A stretch of 63,516 bases of DNA. It comes from Oopsacas minuta. Lineage: Eukaryota > Animalia > Porifera. The DNA is taken from NCBI GenBank assembly GCA_024704765.1, contig JAKMXF010000288.1, forward strand, positions 434,485 to 498,000. Reading direction: 5' to 3'. Numbering within the stretch: position 1 is the stretch's first letter; each line of letters starts with the position of its first letter. Position numbers and translations under genes: made by a program. Below the pieces are notes generated by a model. The model was not told where the DNA came from and did not search any database. It saw nothing but the letters and a program-made list of their open reading frames with translations. Shown piece after piece: positions 3,010-16,069 of the stretch.

Positions 3010-4525
3010 ATGGGAGTGACAGAAGAAGGAGGGTACAAAATTAACGCCAAGTTGAGGGGTCCTGGTCCTGCTAGATACGCTCTCCCCAATACCAGTGGGT
3101 TCTTTGGACACGATGCTACTAAAACTAGACTACCCGCCTATTCATTTGGACTCAGGACAACTTTGTTGTACAGGAAAACGAAAACACCAGGTTAGTAAAC
3201 AAATATACAACTGTTAATATAGGAAATTTACACTCTTAGTTCCAATTTGTAACATACAGTCAACAGTCAACTCCCGGAATGCCCGCTTATATCGAGGTGT
3301 GAAATTGTACAAATATGGTCACAAACCGTCAAAGTAACAAATATTCCATCGGTCATATCGAAGGAATACTCACGGTCCCTTAAGCTTCGATATAACCGGA
3401 GTTAACTGTATGTTTGCCTACGTTTTGTCCTTATTAAATTATACCAATATGGAACTGAAACTAATATATGTATATAACAGGTCCGGCACACTTCATTGAT
3501 GCATCCATGTCTAGATTTGGAAAAGAAGGCTCTTCCAAATTTTCTTTGAAATCTCGTAACCTTATGGGAAAACAATTCCAGACCCCTGCACCTAACGCCT
3601 ATAACGCTGAGAGAATCAGACCCCAGAGAGAACCAAATGCCCCTTCTTATAGTATGGGAACACGAAATAGAATGAGGAAGGCGGATAGCGTTCCTAGTCC
3701 TAATTCGTATTCACTACCTTCTTTAATTGGTAAACAAGGATTATGAAATAACAAACAAACTACACAACAATCAACAAATAAACAAACAATAAACAAACAA
3801 ATAACAATCACATAACAACAAGCTATCTCCACTAGGTCCACGAATAGTAAACAAAGATGCATCGTCTGCTTTCACGATGACAAACCGAGCAAGTGTTGGA
3901 GCATTTGATGAGGATCTAGCTCGCACTCCAGGACCCGGTCACTACTCCATTACCCAAACGGATATTTATAAATCAAAGAGACCGGTATATTCTCTGCAAG
4001 GACGATCATTCATACCAGGTACACTATGGGGACATTAAGGTGTTATTACGTCATTAAGTGTCCTCTAACCTGTGCCACACTTGTTTCATAATACAAAGTG
4101 TCCAATTCATGGATACAATTGGTCCTCTCTAATTGTACACCAGTGGGCAATGGGGTCGAATTGGACAATTAGAGAGGATCTACTGATGTTAATTAGGTGT
4201 ATTAAAGGAGGTCTGTCACTAATATTCACTAGTTTAGTTGTGTAGTTATATTTCACTAATAAAGTGGTGAAATAATGTCAATATTCATGTGGCAGGAAGT
4301 GGCACATAGGTGGTTTAATGTGACACTTTCATTTGTAAATATTCCCTATGAACAACTGGAATTAACACATTCCAACTGTAACTAGGTGATACAGCACAGA
4401 AGCCAGGACCTGGAGCTCATTCTCCAGAAAAGGTTGATATGAGTAAGAGAAGAATGCCCGCCTATTCCATGGGGGTGAGACACTCAGAATATTTGTGTCC
4501 TCTCATAGTAGACGCTGTCTATTAA
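3010..4525 (+). CDS. ODF3: ODF3/SHIPPO-repeat (PGP-repeat) axonemal protein
   Basis: Repeated PGP/PAP/PSP..Y motifs over 4 exons ([43 protein letters not shown]). Ends ...[18 protein letters not shown]. Confidence 0.8.
3257..3408 (+). mobile_element. ~150-bp pogo/Tc1-like MITE family A (other copies ~4845-4960, 7790-7852, 23170-23235, 44270-44415, 56348-56497, 59524-59673)
   Basis: Termini CAGTCAACTCC...GGAGTTAACTG with flanking TA. Shared core GTACAAATATGGTC...CGGTCATATCGAAG. Confidence 0.8.
4092..4230 (+). mobile_element. MITE family C (GGTCCTCTCTAATTGTCC...GGACAATTAGAGAGGACC; copies ~45268-45410, 49555-49620)
   Basis: Near-identical copies in the ODF3 and TBC1D13 introns, with an internal hairpin. 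Confidence 0.75.
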
Positions 4526-5388: not shown

Positions 5389-8300
5389 ATGGCTAGTTCC
5401 AATATAGAGCCTCTAGTATTTACAGATACAAAAGATACAGATGGACACTATCATGAGTTGGTCAATGCTAATCCCAATTATCCGATTGTTATCAAATCGA
5501 TATTATGGTTGTGTGTTGAGAATTATGTGCAAGCCCAGAAATTCCAGGGCACGCCCCTAGCAACCAAAATTCAGAAGACATATGATACGGAACAAGCTAA
5601 GGGGTTAGAGAGAAACTCAGCTGTTTTGGATTTTGTTAGACATGACTGGCATAAAGTTAGTTCCATATTGTTTGTTTGTTTATTTTCATATTTTAGAAAC
5701 ATCAAAATTCTTCAACTTTTCCCTTTTAAATAATTGTTACTATTCGCATGAATATTTTGACACCTTTCTAGATCAAAGATGAAGTTATGCTAGAGGGTTT
5801 ACGCGCCAAATTCACTCAACACAAGGACCTGAAGAAGCTCCTCCTCAAAACTGGAAGTAGACAACTAATCTTCAAGGATTCAGTAGCTGGTTCCTATTGG
5901 GGGAAAGGTAGTGATGGAATGGGAACTAATAAATTAGGTCAGCTGTTAATGAGGACACGAGTAGAGTTACAGGGAAAGAAGCCGAATACTTATGGAACTG
6001 AAACTGGAACCAATTTAGAAGTTAGTTCATGTTTAACTGGTTTTAAGATTTGTTTGTTTGTTTGTTTACTTGTTTGTTTGTTAAATTGTATCACCTATAG
6101 TTCCGAGATTCGTCACCTGACCCTCAATACCCTGACAAACCACCCAAAGGGTCAATCTACTTCCATGACGATATATATCCATTCTTTGAGTTCTCACCAT
6201 ATTTCCCACACGAAGTGCGTATAAATGGCACAAAGTGGCCTACTGTGTCACACTATTATTTGGGACAGAGGTTCGCAGGTTCTAAGCTTGAAGTGAAAAT
6301 TCAGGAATGTGTGTCAGCTGGAGAGGCGATGAAAGTGGCTTATTGTCCAGACCACCAGGATTTTGTTAGGAGAGATTGGAAGGATGTGAAGGTAAGTTTT
6401 GATAATTGTATCCGACACATATTAGTTAGACTACCATATACCTCGAATAGTAACCGAGGTGATTATTCATATTTTAACACCCTTTGACAGGAGAACATAA
6501 CATATAATCACATGAATATATTCACCAACTCCCTAACCTGCTTCTGTGACGTGTTATGTCCCAGTTTCCATGATTACCCCGTTGGTATTTGGCTACACCC
6601 CTCAGTGAGGGAGGTGATCTTTGAAGAGGACTATTTTATTAGCTTGTTTGTTTACTTGTTTACTTGTTTGTTTACTAATAATATGATATTTTCAGGATCC
6701 AGTGATGAAGACTGGATTGAAAGCTAAATTCATACAATTCCCAGAAGCAAAGCATTTACTTTTATCAACAGGATACAAGAGATTAGTACATCATTGTACC
6801 GACACTTACTGGGGGGACGGACTGGATGGAGAGGGTCAAAATATGTTAGGTAACTTCCTCATGGATATAAGGAAAGATTTACAAGATAAGGATTCAGATG
6901 TTAGGTGACAAAATGTTCTATTCTTATGTTATACTTCAGTTCCTATTAATTGTGTTCTGTCGGGTATATTGAGGAAATGGTAAGAGATATAAACTTGAAT
7001 TTTGGCACCTGTGTGGAATGTTATCTATCTTGCTACCATTTCAAATATCTAATTGATATCTCCAAAACTCTCTGGAATAGGTGACAAAATGTGTCCACCT
7101 ATCAGATATGAAGGTTTACCCAAAGTTATATACATATATGAACACCTATTGAGCTGTTATTATTGTTATTATTTGTTGTTTAGACCTATTTTACAAGCAA
7201 TTGGCGCCTCACAACAAAGCCCAACAAAAGCCTCAATAAAATCACGACAATTCGCCAAATTGCAACGTGACGTCAACACAACAATAATAACAACAGACAA
7301 AACAAACAACTATTCATGTTTGTCAATATATTCTGAACACCCGATCACTCTACACCACAAGAGGTGGCCCTCTGTAGCACACTATTATAACGCCATGAAA
7401 TTTGAGGGTACAAGACTTGAGGACAAGATACGCGGGATCGCGACACCAGAAGAGGTCCCGTATGTGGCATACCAACACCGTGAGGGAGTGCAAAAGGGCT
7501 GGACCGAAAAGCGTGATAAGATTATGTCCCAAGGGCTTCATACGAAGTTCGAACAACACCATGAATTGAGGGAGGTGTTGATTGGTACTGGTAGAAGTAA
7601 ATTGGTCTTTCATTCAGAGGAGGATCCGTATTATGGAGATGGAGGAGATGGAAATGGACAAAATAGGCTAGGGGTAATGCTTGAGGATCTCAGAGGAGAA
7701 TTAAGACACCTTGCAACCAGACAACAAGTAAATACAAACAAATACACAAACTACAGTCATTTCCTGTTACATCTAACACGGATATATTGAAATGCCCGCT
7801 TATATCGAGGTGTGAATTTGTACAAATATGTTCCTTAAACGGGAATTGACTGTAATTATATCTTAGTAACCATGGATAAGTGGTTGAAAATTTCTTGTCC
7901 ACATATATGACGTGTCATTTCCGGTTTCACACCCTTTCAGGCGGGATAATTAGAAATATATAGAATTGTCTATTTGTACATATGTAAATTCCATTTACCC
8001 AATATTGTAACTAGGAACAGACGCGATCTGCTTACTACAGATCACCACCAATCGATCCCCCATCAATAACACGCTCCGTGACATCTCTCCCATACCATAA
8101 TCCACTTCACACCTTTCCAGATCCGACACAACCTGAAAGACTTCGATTTTCAGCATTCGACAAAACTTATTCTTGTTTCCTGCCAAGTTCTGAACACCCA
8201 ATTGTGACACAAGATGGCAGAAAGTGGCACACAGTAGAGCACTTTTATCACGCTTCTAAATTTCATGGTGGACAATTTGATGAAATGATTAGTAAGGAAC

Positions 8301-9897
8301 ACTCATTAGAAGAGGTATATATTCATATTTTCACACCTTTTTAACCAATGGAATTGCTCGATATTTAACACACTTTCTAATAACAGGTTCGTAAGCTTGT
8401 CTACTCAAATATGTATCAGCGACAAATACGAAATGATTTTAATCAAGTTAAAGATAATTACATGTTGCATGGTTTGAGACTGAAATTTGAGCAACACGAA
8501 GGTTTGCGACACTTTTTGGTACAAACTGGCAATGCGACACTTGTCTACGACACCGAGAGGGACGAATATTGGGGCTATGGGATCGCTGGTTCGGGTAAGA
8601 ACCGCTTAGGCGGGCTTTTGATGTTGGTACGCAAGGAATTTCATGAATTGTCCCGCGTGGAGTGGGATTATAAACAGAGGGAGTTGAGACACTTAACGCC
8701 TCCCTCTCTGCACCCAACGAGGACTATGACCTTTGCAGAAAATCCTAGAGACATACTTGACAGGTTGGAATGTTTATAATAGTTTTTAGAGAACAATTTG
8801 TATTATTGAACCATGGATTAGCTGGCTAAGTATTTTATCCTTTTGTGAAATAGTAGCAGGGATAAATATTCATATTTTAACACCCTTGTACGGGGGATAT
8901 AATATTAATCACATACTACATTCCATGAATCATTGCATTCTATACAAAATATATTCACCAACTCCCTAACGTGCTTCTGTGACGTGTTATGTCCCAGTTT
9001 CCGTGGTTACCTCATTGGTATTTGCTACACCTCTCAGCGAGGGAGAGGCAATCATTGAAAGAGCTCAATGTTTAAGATTTTTTGTTTACTTGTTTATTAG
9101 TTTGTTTACTAGTTTATTTGTTTACTAAAGTATATTTTTAGTTTCGAATAAATATACTTCTATAAACCTTATCCATGGTCCATTAATACAAATTCTAAGA
9201 TATTACTCAAATCTATTTTTAGATACAACCCATCACACTCTAGACCTGCTCTGACCAATCAGCAGTCATTCTATGACACACATACTTCCCCGCCTCAACA
9301 TTCACCCAAACATTCCTATAAACCATCATTAGAGCATCAGGAATCATTTGTGGCACACCCAACCAATAAATACGACACTTTTGGAAATGACAGTGGCGCA
9401 AACCCATTTGGCTTCATGCCCATGCGAAATATGTTAGCAGACGTAGAAAAGACAAATAGTAAGTTTATTGAAGGTGTGAAGTTGTTTTGTCACATTTCCG
9501 GAGTGGATTTATAAGAAACGAAGTGTCAAATTGTACCGAGTTGTCCGTGGATTTGTATAGGTGGTTAACAGTCATAAAGGACACAAATTGTCGAGCGTGA
9601 GGCTCCAGTAGACTTCGCTTCTTTGAGCCACCAGTTAATCGGGTCAAATTGGACCGATGTGACCCTCTTAAGCGGAGTCTACTGTTTATCCTATTGTTCA
9701 CAAATGTTCTAATTTTAGATGTTTACAATGACACAAGTTTTGGCGTCTCAAGCCCGCCGAGATTGGATCTGAACGAACAAAGCTTTTCAGTTACGGACGA
9801 CTTCCTTATTTCTAATCGTCAGCGACGGACGCTAGGCCTAACTAAGCAACGATCACTCTCTAATCCAGATTTATCCGATTTATATGATTTAAAATAA
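5389..9897 (+). CDS. Protein with four tandem NADAR (YbiA-like) domains and a low-complexity C-terminal tail
   Basis: Phase-compatible exons ~5389-5655, 5773-6020, 6100-6391, 6696-6904, 7182-7728, 8016-8314, 8387-8763, 9221-9458 and 9719-9897. Four YbiA-type units: ENYVQAQKF...AKFTQH...YWG...NKLGQLLM; SHYYLGQRF...AKFIQF...DTYWGDG...NMLGNFLM; AHYYNAMKF...TKFEQH...DPYYGDG...NRLGVML; EHFYHASKF...LKFEQH...DEYWG...NRLGGLLM. Confidence 0.88.
8866..9062 (+). repeat. ~200-bp dispersed repeat family D (copies ~1290-1490 inverted, 6460-6627, 42982-43182, 47568-47710)
   Basis: Shared ATATTCATATTTTAACACCCTTGTACGGGGGA...CACCAACTCCCTAACGTGCTTCTGTGACGTGTTATGTCCCAGTTTCC. No obvious TIR or TSD. Confidence 0.85.
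9604..9682. mobile_element. ~80-bp MITE family B (CAGTAGACTC...GAGTCTACTG; relatives ~18905, 30440, 35840, 45506, 51751, 53586)
   Basis: Short inverted termini and a shared core (TTAATCGGGTCAA..TGGACC) seen in several copies. Confidence 0.7.
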
Positions 9898-12181
9898 GCT
9901 ATTTTTAGTAACATTCCATGATTTCGTGTTTATTAGCCTTTTATCATTGATTCACTTTAGATTATCAAAAGTATATATCTGCCACTTAAATATGGCAGGA
10001 GTCACAGGACATTTGGCATACTTGGACACTTTTTGGCGGGATTTCCATATTTAAGTTCCATTGACACGTGCCGCAAGCCCAAATTGTCCTGAATTTTGTG
10101 GACCATCTGGACAAATATTATTCCCAACTATTTCTTAGTTCTGCCTCTCATGAACCAATTGTCCCCCTTTAGGGAAAGTTGGATCGCCCCCCTGGCTTAT
10201 GGAGACCACATTTCATATATTACACAACCAGTGATTATATTATTTCATTATTATTAAATGTCATTTGATTTGACAAATGAATGCACAGGATTCTACCTTG
10301 AAGGTTTTCACACCTTGAAGGACTACGACTTGTGCTAAAAATAGTGTTCTGTGTAGCTAACCATCTTATTGGTTGATTGGCAAGAGTAACACTTATATTA
10401 TTTGTTATTGGATAGAGGTAAATTTTGGGGGACTTTTGAGTGAAAATTTGTGATATTAATATTTTCACACCTTCAGTTATAGCCTCTTATTTATCTCAAT
10501 ATGATTCAGAAATTAAGTTCCAACCCTAAACCAATAATACAAATATTGAGATCCTGTGCTCCTACTGTTTACTATAGACCCACGAACGATAGCAGGGGTC
10601 CATACAGGATCTCAAAATTTGTATTGTGGGTGAAAATGGTTGGGAACAGCTGATTTAAATCCACATTTTCACACCATTTGGATGATAATACTTGTATTTA
10701 GAGTAATGACATCTTAGATCACATCTATGACAATATCCAAAACATTATCATATAAACTGATTTGTGGATATTTTCGATGATTAAATGTATGAAATTAATT
10801 ATAGATTTTGACACCTTTAATAGTCAATTAAGTCCTTACTAACTTGATACGTGACAATGTTTCAGTTCTTTTTTAGTTGCTAAAAATGCAATTTGTCTTT
10901 GTGAATGACCTTTTCGCATTGAAGGCAATATGTCACTTTAAGTATCCATAGCAACGCTAATTAATTAATTTTCTGATTTTATGCCTATGACCTTGTGATT
11001 TATTCATTGTATAATGTCTGCGATTGATTATCTCATCAACCAATCAATATACGCGCGTCATAAGTGTTGAGTATTGTATTACAGTATTTACAATTCTCTT
11101 TTCATCATGAGTATAAGAATTTTCTCCAAGTTAAGCATTACACTTATCATTGAGGAATCAAGTTTTTGCCTACTAACTCATGTTCAAAACATGAAAGTAA
11201 ACTTGTTTTTTATTCCAACAAGTTATTCCTCAATACAGGGATCGTTCTCTTTTGAACCAAAACCTCTAATTGGGTTCATGATTAAGTTATAAGAGAAATG
11301 ACCCCTACCCGCTTGGGCTAAGTACCCCTCGGATTAAAGTCATTTTATGAAAATATTTCCTCCAAAATGGAAATATATTCATATATTTTTCTATATGTTC
11401 CGTAACAAATATATAATAAAGAGAGATATAAATGAACTCAATAGTTCACAAAAATCTCTAAATATGCTGTATTCTATTTGAAATGGAACATTTGCATTGT
11501 ACCAAAAATGTGCTAATTAGTGTCGCAGCATGCCACAAATTTATGATCCTATACCATAGAGAAAGTTTCATCGAATATACCGTGGACAGCTGCAAAACTA
11601 GAGCTTATTTATTATTAGAAGGTGATAAAGATTATTCACATTCTATGTATTGTAAAATATTCTAAATCATTGGAAAAGAACTGCTGAATAATCATAAATA
11701 TACTATTTTACATAATAATGCATATTCTCGTTATTTATACTTTACAGAGGAAGAACTTTTGTAATTCTTTGAAGTCTTATCCAATGGATTTGCTTGGAGA
11801 ATAATACATAGATTTCTGTATAAAATTACAGGTGTGATTCTTTTGCAATTTATAAAATTTCAAGAAATGCTCAGCATTTATGCTCACAAACATTTTGTAG
11901 AAAACCCTCTGAATTCATCGGATGATTGCAAATCAACTTTATACCATTGTAAGGCGCATACCCAAGTATAACCATAGCAACCATTAGTGTAATAGGAATC
12001 TCAATCATATGCTTATTATAATTAGCATCTGTAATACTACAATACAAACACGCTGTAATGTTATTGGTTGACTGGATTGTATAAATAGTGAATAGATAAA
12101 TGATTTTAACAATTATACTACTATTTTGTGTATATTTATTCGTTTTCAACAAACAAACAAACAAACAAATAATAACAAACA

Positions 12182-12853
12182 ATGAGTTCTCATAATGGTG
12201 TTCTATTTGGGAAAAGTTACAATCAGCTGATGAAAGGAAATTTCCGCCAATCAGTGAGTATCTTTACAAAACTGATGAGTGATAATAATTTGGAAATTCT
12301 GGATTTGGCAGAATCTGAAAACGACACATTTTGTGCCACACGGAGATGTTCCACTCTCAGCCAATCAAATACTTCACTCAGTTCTAATACTTCTGCTGCT
12401 TCTCTATTCAGTGCAACTTCTGCCACTAGCGACACTAACACATCTTGTGAAGGGACACAATTAAGTGTCACTTCACCACCTACTCGCAGAGTTTCAGAGA
12501 GAGGATACCTAAGGGCGAACAGACTGAAGAGAGTGTACAATGAGGCCGTAAGGAGACGACAAGAACAGGACCCTCTGAGTAAGGAGCATTGCAAACACCT
12601 TAAACAATCTCTAGTGATTGCCATCAACAAACTACACTCACTTCCTGACCAATCAGATGGCTATCTGGAAGCAGCTGCTGTTATGTGTCTACTCAGCCAA
12701 TGGAATGTCGCAGAGGAAATATACGAAATAGGCATTCAGCGTTGTCAATACACCACCAATCAAATGCTATACTTCCAACTGGACCAACTCAGAGCCATAA
12801 ACCGACACATTTCTGACACCTTGACTCTCTGTACAAATACTATTATTATTTGA
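12182..12853 (+). CDS. Intronless 223-aa hypothetical protein with a Ser/Thr-rich middle and a C-terminal TPR-like helical hairpin (copy 1)
   Basis: ORF track. PDQSDGYLEAAAVMCLLSQWNVAEEIYEIGIQ resembles a TPR motif. Confidence 0.6.
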   Translation: MSSHNGVLFGKSYNQLMKGNFRQSVSIFTKLMSDNNLEILDLAESENDTFCATRRCSTLSQSNTSLSSNTSAASLFSATSATSDTNTSCEGTQLSVTSPPTRRVSERGYLRANRLKRVYNEAVRRRQEQDPLSKEHCKHLKQSLVIAINKLHSLPDQSDGYLEAAAVMCLLSQWNVAEEIYEIGIQRCQYTTNQMLYFQLDQLRAINRHISDTLTLCTNTIII

Positions 12854-14228
12854 TTCTCTGTACATTATGCGAATACTGTAATTATGTTTATTTGTATTTT
12901 ATCAAAATATATTCGATTAAACTATTCTACATTCCTCAATCAGTATCTTAGCAACAATATCGGGGACATGGTATGTGAGGTATAAGAGTAATATAATTGG
13001 GATTCACGCTTTACACCTTGGTAACCGATTATTTAATCAGGAATGTACTCTATTCGTTAAGATAATTAGCTCATTAACTGTCCAACAGCTAACAACCGTT
13101 TCTAAGATTGGAATGTATCTGTCACTAAATATGATACTATCAATATATGGAAATGTCTACAGTGGAAGTTGTGCCACATAATATCCACATTTAAATATCA
13201 ATATTCGTCTGAATTATAGCAAAATGATAACCAAACCTTATCTCCAAAATATTGCTTACTTCCAAATAGGAGATTTTAATCTACTGTTATCATTTACGGA
13301 GTGTTATAATTCGACTACATCAGAAATTGGTGCTGATAACCATTTGATTGATCAAGACATAACATGCATAAATCATCATAGCAACATACATCCATATAAA
13401 GAATGCAAATATTCATAAATGACATGCAGGGTGTTGAACTTATACACATTTCTAAGGTAACAGATCATTGCTATATACAAACACGATTATATTCTAAAAA
13501 CGTGTATTACACAATATAAGTCAATATAAAGTACATTCCACATGATATAACTGGTAGTGAAGGAAATAATATGACTATTATTAGTAACACATGATTTAAT
13601 CAGGTAAGCTAGCATTTGATTGGGTAATATCGTATAAGAATATATTTAGCAAATAAAGCTTTCAACCAATCAGATTACATATTATCCCAAAAGTAAATAA
13701 ATTCTGGAAAAACAACAATAACTCTTTTGGGAATTCCCCCGAAAATATTATCAATCAAATTCTAATTTTAGCTAAAATACTACTATTAGATATTACTAAT
13801 TAGATTTGTTAATTATTAAGTTTACTTATTCACGTTATTTTGTATTAATAAACATTTCAATATATGGAACTAATTAACTTAATTAACACCTAATTTGAAA
13901 ATAACAAATACTCTCAAATTTGATTCGCCAACTGGTTTATGATAGTATCCTATTTAGTGACAGATACATTCCAATCTTAGAAACGGTTGTTAGCTGTTGG
14001 ACAGTTAATGAGCTAATTATCTTAACGAATAGAGTACATTCCTGATTAAATAATCGGTTACCAAGGTGTAAAGCGTGAATCCCAATTATATTACTCTTAT
14101 ACCTCACATACCATGTCCCCGATATTGTTGCTAAGATACTGATTGAGGAATGTAGAATAGTTTAATCGAATATATTTTGATAAAATACAAATAAACATAA
14201 TTACAGTATTCGCATAATGTACAGAGAA

Positions 14229-14900
14229 TCAAATAATAATAGTATTTGTACAGAGAGTCAAGGTGTCAGAAATGTGTCGGTTTATGGCTCTGAGTTGGTC
14301 CAGTTGGAAGTATAGCATTTGATTGGTGGTGTATTGACAACGCTGAATGCCTATTTCGTATATTTCCTCTGCGACATTCCATTGGCTGAGTAGACACATA
14401 ACAGCAGCTGCTTCCAGATAGCCATCTGATTGGTCAGGAAGTGAGTGTAGTTTGTTGATGGCAATCACTAGAGATTGTTTAAGGTGTTTGCAATGCTCCT
14501 TACTCAGAGGGTCCTGTTCTTGTCGTCTCCTTACGGCCTCATTGTACACTCTCTTCAGTCTGTTCGCCCTTAGGTATCCTCTCTCTGAAACTCTGCGAGT
14601 AGGTGGTGAAGTGACACTTAATTGTGTCCCTTCACAAGATGTGTTAGTGTCGCTAGTGGCAGAAGTTGCACTGAATAGAGAAGCAGCAGAAGTATTAGAA
14701 CTGAGTGAAGTATTTGATTGGCTGAGAGTGGAACATCTCCGTGTGGCACAAAATGTGTCGTTTTCAGATTCTGCCAAATCCAGAATTTCCAAATTATTAT
14801 CACTCATCAGTTTTGTAAAGATACTCACTGATTGGCGGAAATTTCCTTTCATCAGCTGATTGTAACTTTTCCCAAATAGAACACCATTATGAGAACTCAT
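14229..14900 (-). CDS. Identical copy of the 223-aa TPR-like protein (copy 2, convergent with copy 1)
   Basis: Translation identical to 12182..12853. Confidence 0.55.
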   Translation of the reverse strand: MSSHNGVLFGKSYNQLMKGNFRQSVSIFTKLMSDNNLEILDLAESENDTFCATRRCSTLSQSNTSLSSNTSAASLFSATSATSDTNTSCEGTQLSVTSPPTRRVSERGYLRANRLKRVYNEAVRRRQEQDPLSKEHCKHLKQSLVIAINKLHSLPDQSDGYLEAAAVMCLLSQWNVAEEIYEIGIQRCQYTTNQMLYFQLDQLRAINRHISDTLTLCTNTIII

Positions 14901-16069
14901 TGTTTGTTATTATTTGTTTGTTTGTTTGTTTGTTGAAAACGAATAAATATACACAAAATAGTAGTATAATTGTTAAAATCATTTATCTATTCACTATTTA
15001 TACAATCCAGTCTACTACATGTTTCTGTTACACACTGTTATATGAATGAGTTGTTAAACTCAATGGCATTCCTTTGATGTGAATATGTACAAGATCTAGG
15101 CGGGCTTTTTTCTCGTTTTCACCTAGGTAGACACATTGTTATCCGTGTAATTGCCTTTATCTCTGACAAACTTTCTCCAATTGCAGTTCTAATCATATAA
15201 ATTGGCTGAATGGCTCTATGTATGATTTATCAGTCATTCAAGGAATTTGCATGCATGTATAGTCAGTGATGCTTTACATTCCTCTTCACATTTTTATCTG
15301 GTTGCTATAGTAACTCCCTTGAATTCATTAAACTTCAAACTTTAGCTTCGCTTATGAAGGTGATAGAGTGTTTAATGGTCGCAGCCAGTTCCGCCAACTT
15401 TCTAACAAATTGAATGATTGAGGGTCCTCATAATAGCTCTATGGGGCTGTAACCATGGGGAACAGCCCCCTGCTCCCCTGCGTCGGCGCTTATTTGTACC
15501 TTAATAGTGTTAGTGTCTGATAGTTGTCATGTTCTCATTCACCCATAATTCTTAGTGCATTTTTATACTTATTATTTGTAGAATTTACGGTTTCTGATTG
15601 AAATTATTAATAAAGCTATTTTCCACATATGGCGCCTGTTTATGGATTCACTTTGTGTCACGATAAATTCTAGATGTTAACACAGGTGTTAAATATTCAT
15701 ACATATGGTCTAACTAATTTGGACATCATCTTTCATTCAAAAGTTCAAAATATGCAAAAATTGGCTCATAGGTTGTAAAATTTATGGTTTTATGATAATT
15801 TAATAATGGAACTAGCTTCCAAATAGTTCCAAATTGTAACACCTTTTATGTGGATGAATGAGACACAAGTTAACACATATGTTGTGTCTGTGTAACCAAT
15901 GGTTCATTTATGTTCCAATTGGGACTATAATCTGTATTTATCTATCTGAACAGTGGATAAGAAATGACCTCAACAAGATTAACACTAATCCCATTATGCA
16001 TAACACTTTATTGGAACCATAGATTTAAGTGGCTTTCAAATTGAAACTAAACATTGTTATTATATCAAA

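Follow-up and report, generated by a model that had tools for sequence, protein, structure and literature searches.

The window analysed here is a 63,516-nt stretch of the Oopsacas minuta contig JAKMXF010000288.1, and all gene coordinates are given in window numbering. On its + strand, at 5389-9897, the window contains a gene of nine exons that encodes four NADAR domains (D1 to D4) within one polypeptide. The fold is that of enzymes which usually take ADP-ribose off the bases of DNA and RNA. All four domains lack the essential catalytic glutamate and, therefore, the protein is more likely to bind ADP-ribose marks of this kind than to remove them. In the reading that is favoured, at roughly even chances, the four-NADAR protein would bind or sense an ADP-ribose-type ligand in a multivalent manner, without hydrolysing it. 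Work on NADARs has so far concerned their activity as erasers of nucleobase ADP-ribosylation, and the role of the animal members of the family has been described as unclear (PMC11125620).

The residues responsible for ligand binding and catalysis are known from homologues. Residue numbering is that of the Phytophthora nicotianae NADAR (PnNADAR), to which the 8BAU chain (offset +2) was mapped via a profile alignment. In the ADP-ribose complex of PnNADAR, contacts to the distal ribose are made by E43 and E125 and those to the phosphates by K50, R79, W89, R93, W133 and D130 (Schuller et al., PMC11543638). The E. coli C7 NADAR is inactivated by D171A/N, K95 and E88Q mutations, which affect the equivalents of E125, K50 and E43, respectively; in vitro, E88A makes little difference and K95R is still active (PMC11543638). 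The last-strand Glu of SCO5665 tolerates no substitution of this kind, as both E167D and E167Q lose all activity (Mikolcevic et al., PMC12945103). This last-strand Glu defines the YbiA family, the DarG1 NADARs use a shifted Asp and the phage NADARs a His (PMC11125620). The phage T4-type NADARs with His at the Glu position hydrolyse ADP-ribosylated guanine (G-ADPr) (PMC11125620, PMC12945103).

Canonical single-domain NADARs are highly uniform at these positions. Among 107 of them, E43, H44, K50, W89, D130 and W133 are each present in at least 106, and the E43/K50/E125 positions read E/K/E in at least 106. The near-invariant canonical set (E43, H44, K50, W89, E125, D130 and W133) is kept whole by none of D1-D4. 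D1, with the motifs VENYVQAQKF and LIFKDSVAGSYWG, carries E43, N44, K50, W89, F or L at 125 (or K/Q, with a one-residue indel), G130 and W133, and thus departs at H44N, E125F/L and D130G. D2, read as VSHYYLGQRF and LVHHCTDTYWG, carries S43, H44, R50, W89, H125, D130 and W133, the departures being E43S, K50R, R79Y and E125H. D3 (VAHYYNAMKF and LVFHSEEDPYYG) has A or S at 43, H44, K50, W89, F125, D130 and Y133, with the departures E43A/S, R79Y, E125F and W133Y. Finally, D4 (VEHFYHASKF and LVYDTERDEYWG) has E43, H44, K50, F89 (a Trp in P0008, the protein of a relative introduced below), Y125, D130 and W133, and departs at W89F, E125Y and H126D. The Arg79 position is occupied by Tyr in D2 and D3, and in D4 by Asn in the window protein and by Tyr in P0008. 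These motifs were read from the sequence and the exon translations, and every motif named by an earlier reading of the window made without database searches (the sequence-only reading) was found again in this way; its claim that each domain carries a differently altered active site, with the LVE glutamate lost in all four, holds.

The catalytic set formed by E43, K50 and the last-strand acid is thus changed throughout, to E/K/F(L) in D1, S/R/H in D2, A(S)/K/F in D3 and E/K/Y in D4, and the LVEH motif of the YbiA family, with its last-strand Glu, is replaced by LIFK, LVHH, LVFH and LVYD, respectively. An Asp placed two residues before the aligned Glu, as in the DarG1/BC4488 type, is found in none of D1-D4. 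In D1, the position at +2 from the lost Glu is occupied by an invariant Asp. D2 has the His of the phage type, but Ser and Arg at the E43 and K50 positions, whereas the only His-type example of the survey described below (P0103) reads EKH. Judging by the mutagenesis of the homologues, canonical catalysis would be lost in all four domains. The ligand pocket, on the other hand, appears to be only partly eroded, with K/R50, W/F89 and mostly D130 and W133 kept.

The assignment of the four domains to the NADAR superfamily is firm. Pfam NADAR (PF08719) matches exons 1-7 with complementary profile ranges, such that D1 is formed by exons 1 and 2, D2 by exons 3 and 4, D3 by exon 5 and D4 by exons 6 and 7. 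D3 (98.1 bits) and the C-terminal halves of D1 (58.8 bits), D2 (53.7 bits) and D4 (70.3 bits) exceed the PF08719 gathering score of 35.1 bits. The NCBIfam scan agrees with Pfam and places TIGR02464 on D3 at 91.9 bits. By sequence, D3 matches E. coli YbiA (2B3W) with an E-value of 6.7e-30. The AlphaFold2 model of D3 has a predicted local distance difference test score (pLDDT) of 90.8, and Foldseek aligns it with 2b3w (E-value 6e-11, template-modelling scores 0.73/0.78) and with 8bau, the complex of PnNADAR with ADP-ribose (E-value 8e-6). In the model of D1 and D2 together both domains have a pLDDT above 90 and the same order of secondary structure, the linker at 164-181 falls below 50 and the predicted template-modelling score is 0.53. 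The models of D1-D3 show the YbiA-like alpha+beta fold, with a helical core and two small flanking sheets. D1 and D2 are modelled as separate units on a flexible connection, and no fixed packing between them is predicted with confidence; from these models, which cover D1-D3, the protein is a chain of four NADAR domains that fold independently and are joined by flexible linkers.

By eye, the N-terminus shows neither a signal-like nor a membrane segment. The C-terminal tail, of ~140 aa, is rich in S/P/T/N/Q, as is linker 3, and is probably disordered. Four motifs of the tail are conserved in all relatives: QQSFYD(S/T)HTSP, EHQESFV, NEQSF(S/G)(V/A)TDD(F/Y)L and KQRSLSNPDL. The last of them bears what we take to be a resemblance to a 14-3-3 mode-1 site (RSxSxP).

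The locus is one real, expressed and spliced gene of nine exons. The read evidence comes from four runs (X1-X4) of one sample, none of which is recorded as RNA; X4 is termed RNA-like from its exon-only contigs and their joints. Runs X1-X3 cover the stretch evenly, as expected of DNA, and X4 covers the exons and has zero depth in two intron bins. The X4 contigs contain the joints 5655>5772, 6391>6696, 7727>8015 and 8314>8387, all with GT..AG borders, and none of these splice joints is seen in the DNA-like runs X1-X3 of the same sample. The exons are phase-compatible throughout and free of stops. In a relative, an intronless Logan contig of 3068 nt (L018, run SRR2064712) encodes an open reading frame (ORF) of 927 aa, P0008, with four NADAR stretches that reach 354 bits in Pfam, and the exons of the window abut exactly in this contig at 418|419, 976|977 and 2098|2099, as predicted. 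A word search with P0008 retrieved the public record of the gene, P0159 or 'hypothetical protein LOD99_3823 [Oopsacas minuta]', of 883 aa, to which exons 1-7 and 9 are 100% identical, exon 8 differing from it solely if a weaker alternative donor is chosen; LOD99_3823 is publicly described as an uncharacterised 'NADAR domain-containing protein'. The single spliced transcript with four complete NADAR folds that the sequence-only reading had proposed is thus borne out by the X4 joints, the P0008 contig and the PF08719 matches.

Exon 1 (5389..5655, +) starts with the ATG at 5389 and encodes the N-terminal half of D1 (Pfam NADAR 21-87, 28.8 bits). The transcript contigs over it begin at ~5361, an X4 contig crosses the 5655>5772 joint with 100 nt on either side, and the exon is 100% identical to residues 1-89 of P0159. 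Exon 2 (5772..6020, +) completes D1 (Pfam NADAR 89-162, 58.8 bits) and opens linker 1; its end, CCAATTTAGAA, is spelled by the X4 loose end before 6101, which supports the 6020>6101 joint. Exon 3 (6101..6391, +) holds the rest of linker 1 and the N-terminal half of D2 (Pfam NADAR 12-89, 20.4 bits), and its X4 joint to 6696 was reported as 6389>6694, with the cut lying at +2. Exon 4 (6696..6904, +) contains the C-terminal half of D2 (Pfam NADAR 92-163, 53.7 bits) and ends in the split codon AG|A. The X4 loose end behind 6904 spells the start of exon 5, ACCTATTTTACAAGCA, in support of the 6904>7184 joint. Linker 2 and the entire D3 are encoded by exon 5 (7184..7727, +; Pfam NADAR 7-163, 98.1 bits). 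Exon 6 (8015..8314, +), which is joined to exon 5 in three X4 contigs, consists of linker 3 (~45 aa, Pro/Ser/Thr-rich) and the N-terminal half of D4 (Pfam NADAR 13-64, 15.3 bits), and a further X4 joint leads from it to exon 7.

Exon 7 (8387..8763, +) encodes the C-terminal half of D4 (Pfam NADAR 74-162, 70.3 bits) and the start of the C-terminal tail. The sequence-only reading had ended the gene at 8763, a limit that proved to be a splice donor (CAG|GTTGGA at 8764), because the X4 reads run from 8763 into 9223: the X4 loose end behind 8763 is an exact match to 9223-9248. Two more exons follow. Exon 8 (9223..9458, +) lies within the S/P/T/N/Q-rich tail and is kept at 45-74% amino-acid identity in L001-L004. 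In the public model it ends at the donor A|GTAAGT at 9459, and P0159 reads ...EKTN|N|VYND across the junction; a second, weaker donor in the same phase lies at 9474. The 'SK' residues that seem conserved after the 9459 donor in the relatives are merely translated donor consensus. The joint between exons 8 and 9 is based on the public annotation and homology, as it lies outside the stretch covered by the read contigs. Exon 9 (9719..9897, +) encodes the end of the tail, including the conserved motifs NEQSFSVTDDFL and KQRSLSNPDL, and the stop TAA at 9895-9897; it is 100% identical to residues 826-883 of P0159 and present in all five relatives. Introns 3 and 7 contain (at 6446-6680 and 8849-9112) a short interspersed nuclear element (SINE)-like interspersed repeat of ~235 bp that ends in a (TTTG/TTTAC)n tail. 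The core of the two intron copies is 94% identical over 77 nt, and related short pieces occur near 5664-5700, 6034-6100 and 8302-8350. The word depth in DNA contigs rises over the repeat from ~90-400 up to ~39,700, and the repeat is thus very abundant in the genome.

The gene is conserved in relatives (ERZ25072730, ERZ20067936, ERZ25072740, ERZ25069837 and SRR2064712), represented by four assemblies (L001-L005, two of these loci being haplotigs of one sample) and the P0008 contig. All nine exons are colinear in the four assemblies, with amino-acid identities of 45-92%. The nonsynonymous divergence from the window (dN) is 0.05-0.37 per exon, and the synonymous divergence (dS) reaches at least 0.87 where saturation still allows its computation; with dS saturated, exact omega values are not estimable. 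Nearly all of the six sequences compared agree in the altered active-site states. Every domain, as well as the tail, is under strong purifying selection, and the gene is not decaying, because the active-site states are fixed and dS is saturated at a dN of 0.05-0.37.

A free, quick IQ-TREE analysis of 120 domains over 154 columns gave little resolution, and the four domains did not come together in it. The tree constrained to hold them together was 54 log-likelihood units better, with a p-value of 0.91 in the approximately unbiased test. Internal duplication of one NADAR is therefore compatible with the data and somewhat favoured, though not proven, and a bacterial origin of individual domains, the other outcome for which the sequence-only reading had allowed, found no support in the 120-domain tree. 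Orthologous domains are 61-76% identical between the window protein and P0008 and paralogous ones 32-41%; since the former values far exceed the latter, the duplication predates the split from the species of P0008. The introns within D1 and D2 share their phase and are offset by two codons, that of D4 lies elsewhere and D3 has none.

Tandem NADARs lacking the last-strand Glu (Glu-less) are not confined to sponges. The best 150 matches of an exhaustive representative search with D3 were surveyed, and 148 non-orthologous proteins were scored; the query is itself Glu-less, shared ancestry was left uncorrected and the identities to the sponge domains are ~30-37%. About 35 of the best 150 matches contain at least two NADAR domains, and one abalone protein has seven. 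Glu-less domains occur in 27 of the 33 multi-NADAR proteins versus 8 of the 115 single-domain ones, counts that carry the bias of a Glu-less query and uncorrected kinship. In the multi-NADAR proteins the Glu is replaced mostly by F or Y, and the Glu-less domains keep H44 in 53, W89 in 54, D130 in 49 and W133 in 52 of 55 cases. With 33 of the 148 proteins carrying tandem NADARs, a second four-NADAR gene (P0160) in the same genome and the gene itself publicly annotated, though uncharacterised, the architecture is not unique.

The Pfam scan places several of these Glu-less pairs in proteins with other domains. Six are fused to EF-hand-Ion_trans-cNMP_binding channels (P0010, P0014, P0015, P0017, P0018 and P0042), two of which are named by their source as the diplonemids Artemidia motanka and Namystynia karyoxenos. 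Further pairs accompany FYVE and inositol-5-phosphatase-like domains (P0020 and P0023), kinases (P0066 and P0080, including a basidiomycete protein), MLKL_N (P0084) and 5'-nucleotidase C (P0016). These sites appear to be those where a regulatory ligand-binding module would be expected. The Glu-less NADARs may therefore be members of a wider, undescribed class that occurs almost only in tandem, of which the sponge gene would be a free-standing member. The NADAR family and the gene record are already known; NADAR-only arrays and the Glu-less class are apparently undescribed, as the NADAR papers and the one virus review that were searched contain no description of NADAR-NADAR arrays or of such a class. 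The same search found no publication on Oopsacas NADARs or on architectures joining NADAR to ion channels, MLKL_N or FYVE-phosphatases.

The four-domain gene is not the only NADAR of this sponge, because canonical E-K-E NADARs are kept elsewhere in its genome. The 61.5-Mb assembly contains at least 26 NADAR matches. The family is strongly expanded, with members on C133 (644-659 kb and 747 kb), C222 (254 kb), C354 (813 kb) and C33 (129 kb). The canonical E-K-E NADARs on C133 and C222 lie in long ORFs without introns (478-963 aa), the N-terminal parts of which are rich in Cys; truncated matches are found on C133 as well, and the ORF on C354 is a very divergent, degenerate one with two NADARs. 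The second four-NADAR gene is found on C111 at ~214-231 kb (L013 and L015). Its protein, P0160, has 918 aa and a hydrophobic C-terminal end, and its public name, 'Riboflavin biosynthesis protein PYRR, chloroplastic-like', seems to stem from annotation transfer. P0160 has a canonical D1 (LVED...DMYWG) followed by degenerate domains; no position-wise orthology was found between its domains and those of the four-domain gene in the window. About 14 NADAR exon matches extend over 17 kb of C111, which suggests several tandem paralogues.

As possible roles, the sequence-only reading had also named a defence against microbial toxins that ADP-ribosylate and a partnership with an endogenous transferase. 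Enzymes that could write ADP-ribose marks are encoded, at no fewer than 15 PARP loci (at least 15 were counted) and three ART loci. The genome gave no match to DarT (PF14487) or to Scabin-like transferases, in searches run without a positive control, so that these results are not evidence of absence. A toxin linkage of the DarG1 type does not apply to the four-domain gene, an animal gene with introns, with the same reservation on the DarT search.

The binder or sensor role is favoured because the pocket is largely kept with the acid lost, because selection acts on all four copies and because Glu-less NADARs elsewhere keep regulatory company. In the mechanism envisaged, D1-D4 would retain much of the ligand pocket and, deprived of the general acid/base, would carry out no canonical hydrolysis of ADP-ribosyl-bases. 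The protein would act as a multivalent reader, sensor or scaffold, and the motifs of the C-terminal tail would recruit partners. ADP-ribosylated nucleic acid, poly- or mono-ADP-ribose and a soluble NAD-derived nucleotide are the candidate ligands. Several observations weigh against this role. The ligand of the Glu-less NADARs is assigned by homology alone, and ADP-ribose binding is not assured, given that Arg79, a pyrophosphate contact, is replaced in D2-D4 and D130 is lost in D1. Some catalysis is possible in D2, whose His is that of active T4-type NADARs, and in D1, whose invariant Asp at +2 mirrors the shifted Asp of the DarG1 NADARs. The argument from fusions draws on distant relatives (~30-37% identity) retrieved with a Glu-less query and uncorrected for relatedness, and no effector domain is present in the sponge protein itself. 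The sequence-only reading had proposed a reader or eraser of ADP-ribosylated nucleic acids with at most D4 or D1 catalytic. Its binding part is reasonable; its ranking of the domains is not supported, as D1 and D4 are also without the essential Glu and D2, with the His of an active T4-type state, cannot be placed below them.

An active multi-site ADP-ribosyl-base glycohydrolase that works with non-canonical residues (the His of D2, the +2 Asp of D1, and E43 and K50 in D4), its domains having diverged in substrate (for example G-, C- or U-ADPr on DNA versus RNA), is a possibility to be taken seriously, albeit an unlikely one. Phage NADARs with a His at the same position hydrolyse G-ADPr (PMC11125620, PMC12945103), the DarG1 NADARs take their acid from a shifted Asp (PMC11543638), and the minor effect of E88A and the activity of K95R in vitro indicate that the Ser and the Arg of D2 could each be tolerated singly. 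Strong purifying selection on every domain and the many PARPs of the genome, which could write substrates, agree with such an enzyme. However, even the replacement of Glu by Asp or Gln abolishes the activity of SCO5665, and F, L and Y cannot serve as acid/base; D2 combines three departures, whereas the His-type P0103 keeps E and K; further near-invariant residues are lost in each domain, and the canonical NADARs elsewhere in the genome could do the job. The domains might instead have been re-purposed, their ligand or partner having nothing to do with ADP-ribose (another nucleotide, a metabolite or protein contacts) and the NADAR fold providing no more than a stable framework. This is improbable, but it would account for the alteration of several of the ADP-ribose contacts of 8BAU (Arg79 in D2-D4, D130 in D1, W133Y in D3 and W89F in D4). 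It sits poorly with the retention of K/R50, W/F89, G134 and mostly D130 and W133 across the relatives and the wider Glu-less class, as expected of a working phosphate/ribose pocket.

A housekeeping role of the YbiA type, in which the protein would be an N-glycosidase that breaks down reactive intermediates of the riboflavin pathway, is implied by the 'PYRR-like' name of the paralogue, but is very improbable. The best match among solved structures is indeed E. coli YbiA, and TIGR02464 reaches 91.9 bits on D3; nevertheless, the Glu that defines this family is absent in all four domains, and the name appears to be a product of annotation transfer. To our knowledge, animals do not make riboflavin, and the substrates of such a role would be absent. 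The notion that four adjacent single-domain genes, or a decaying pseudogene array, were misread as one gene is hardly credible. Prokaryote-style gene callers do split the orthologous loci into short separate ORFs, but the RNA-like joints, the intronless four-domain contig of the relative, the phase-compatible and stop-free exons and a dN far below dS contradict it.

A broader proposal can be put forward, tentatively and with more doubt than confidence. Tandem Glu-less NADARs may be an unrecognised eukaryotic sensing module for ADP-ribose or an NAD-derived messenger, by which channels, kinases, phosphoinositide phosphatases and MLKL-like executioners would be gated or regulated in protists and fungi. 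Glass sponges, with their greatly expanded NADAR family, would also have the module as a free-standing, multivalent sensor or scaffold of four domains, acting together with canonical NADAR erasers and PARP writers in ADP-ribose signalling or immunity. Such a role would also correct misleading names, such as the 'riboflavin biosynthesis protein PYRR-like' given to sponge paralogues.

Other features of the window lie apart from the gene. A large, near-perfect palindrome spans 12070-15012, in which an ORF starting with ATGAGTTCTCATAATGG at ~12183 recurs in reverse complement at ~14900, so that two identical genes converge. Upstream of the NADAR gene, an ORF at 526-876 ends in ...NALVQLINS and is HYPK-like in appearance; a UBA_HYPK gene precedes the orthologous loci L004 and L005. 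Another upstream ORF, at 3468-3746, contains PxPNxY repeats.

Among the systems already known, E. coli YbiA (2B3W) shares the fold and a clear homology with the sponge domains, in which the Lys of AQKF and the DxYWG motif can be made out. YbiA consists of one domain and has the last-strand Glu (LVEH), whereas the sponge protein has four domains in one chain and that Glu in none. The NADARs of P. nicotianae (8BAU; PMC11543638) and of Amphimedon queenslandica (PMC12945103) are active eukaryotic guanine/cytosine de-ADP-ribosylases, and the latter shows that sponges possess active NADARs. Like the O. minuta protein, both are eukaryotic and without toxin-gene linkage, and the equivalents of their K50, W89, D130 and W133 are mostly retained in it. 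These enzymes keep E43, K50 and E125, whereas the O. minuta protein departs at E125 four times and at one to three more contacts per domain. The phage T4-type NADARs (gp30.3 family) have a His in place of the last-strand Glu, as does D2 in its LVHH motif; D2 is, however, one of four domains in an animal protein and has Ser and Arg where the His-type P0103 keeps E43 and K50.

Two further systems offer analogies. Tandem macrodomains, as in PARP14, PARP9 and coronavirus nsp3, form ADP-ribose-processing arrays in which some copies are divergent or act as readers. Viral macrodomains in tandem are mentioned in PMC9503650. The likeness is one of analogy only, as macrodomains have an unrelated fold, usually include at least one copy that is a proven hydrolase and sit in arrays on enzymes. 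The NUDT9-H domain of TRPM2 is a hydrolase-derived module that binds ADP-ribose and serves as the ligand sensor of an ion channel. It has a Nudix fold, unlike NADAR, and the sponge protein has no channel; the NADAR-channel fusions would come closest to it, with the diplonemid Glu-less pairs sitting behind the Ion_trans-cNMP_binding core. The Glu-less array of the sponge and the regulatory placement of such domains elsewhere suggest a second life of the NADAR fold as a reader or sensor, like that of the macrodomains and Nudix domains, which, if true, would provide a concrete handle on the endogenous ligands of eukaryotic NADARs.

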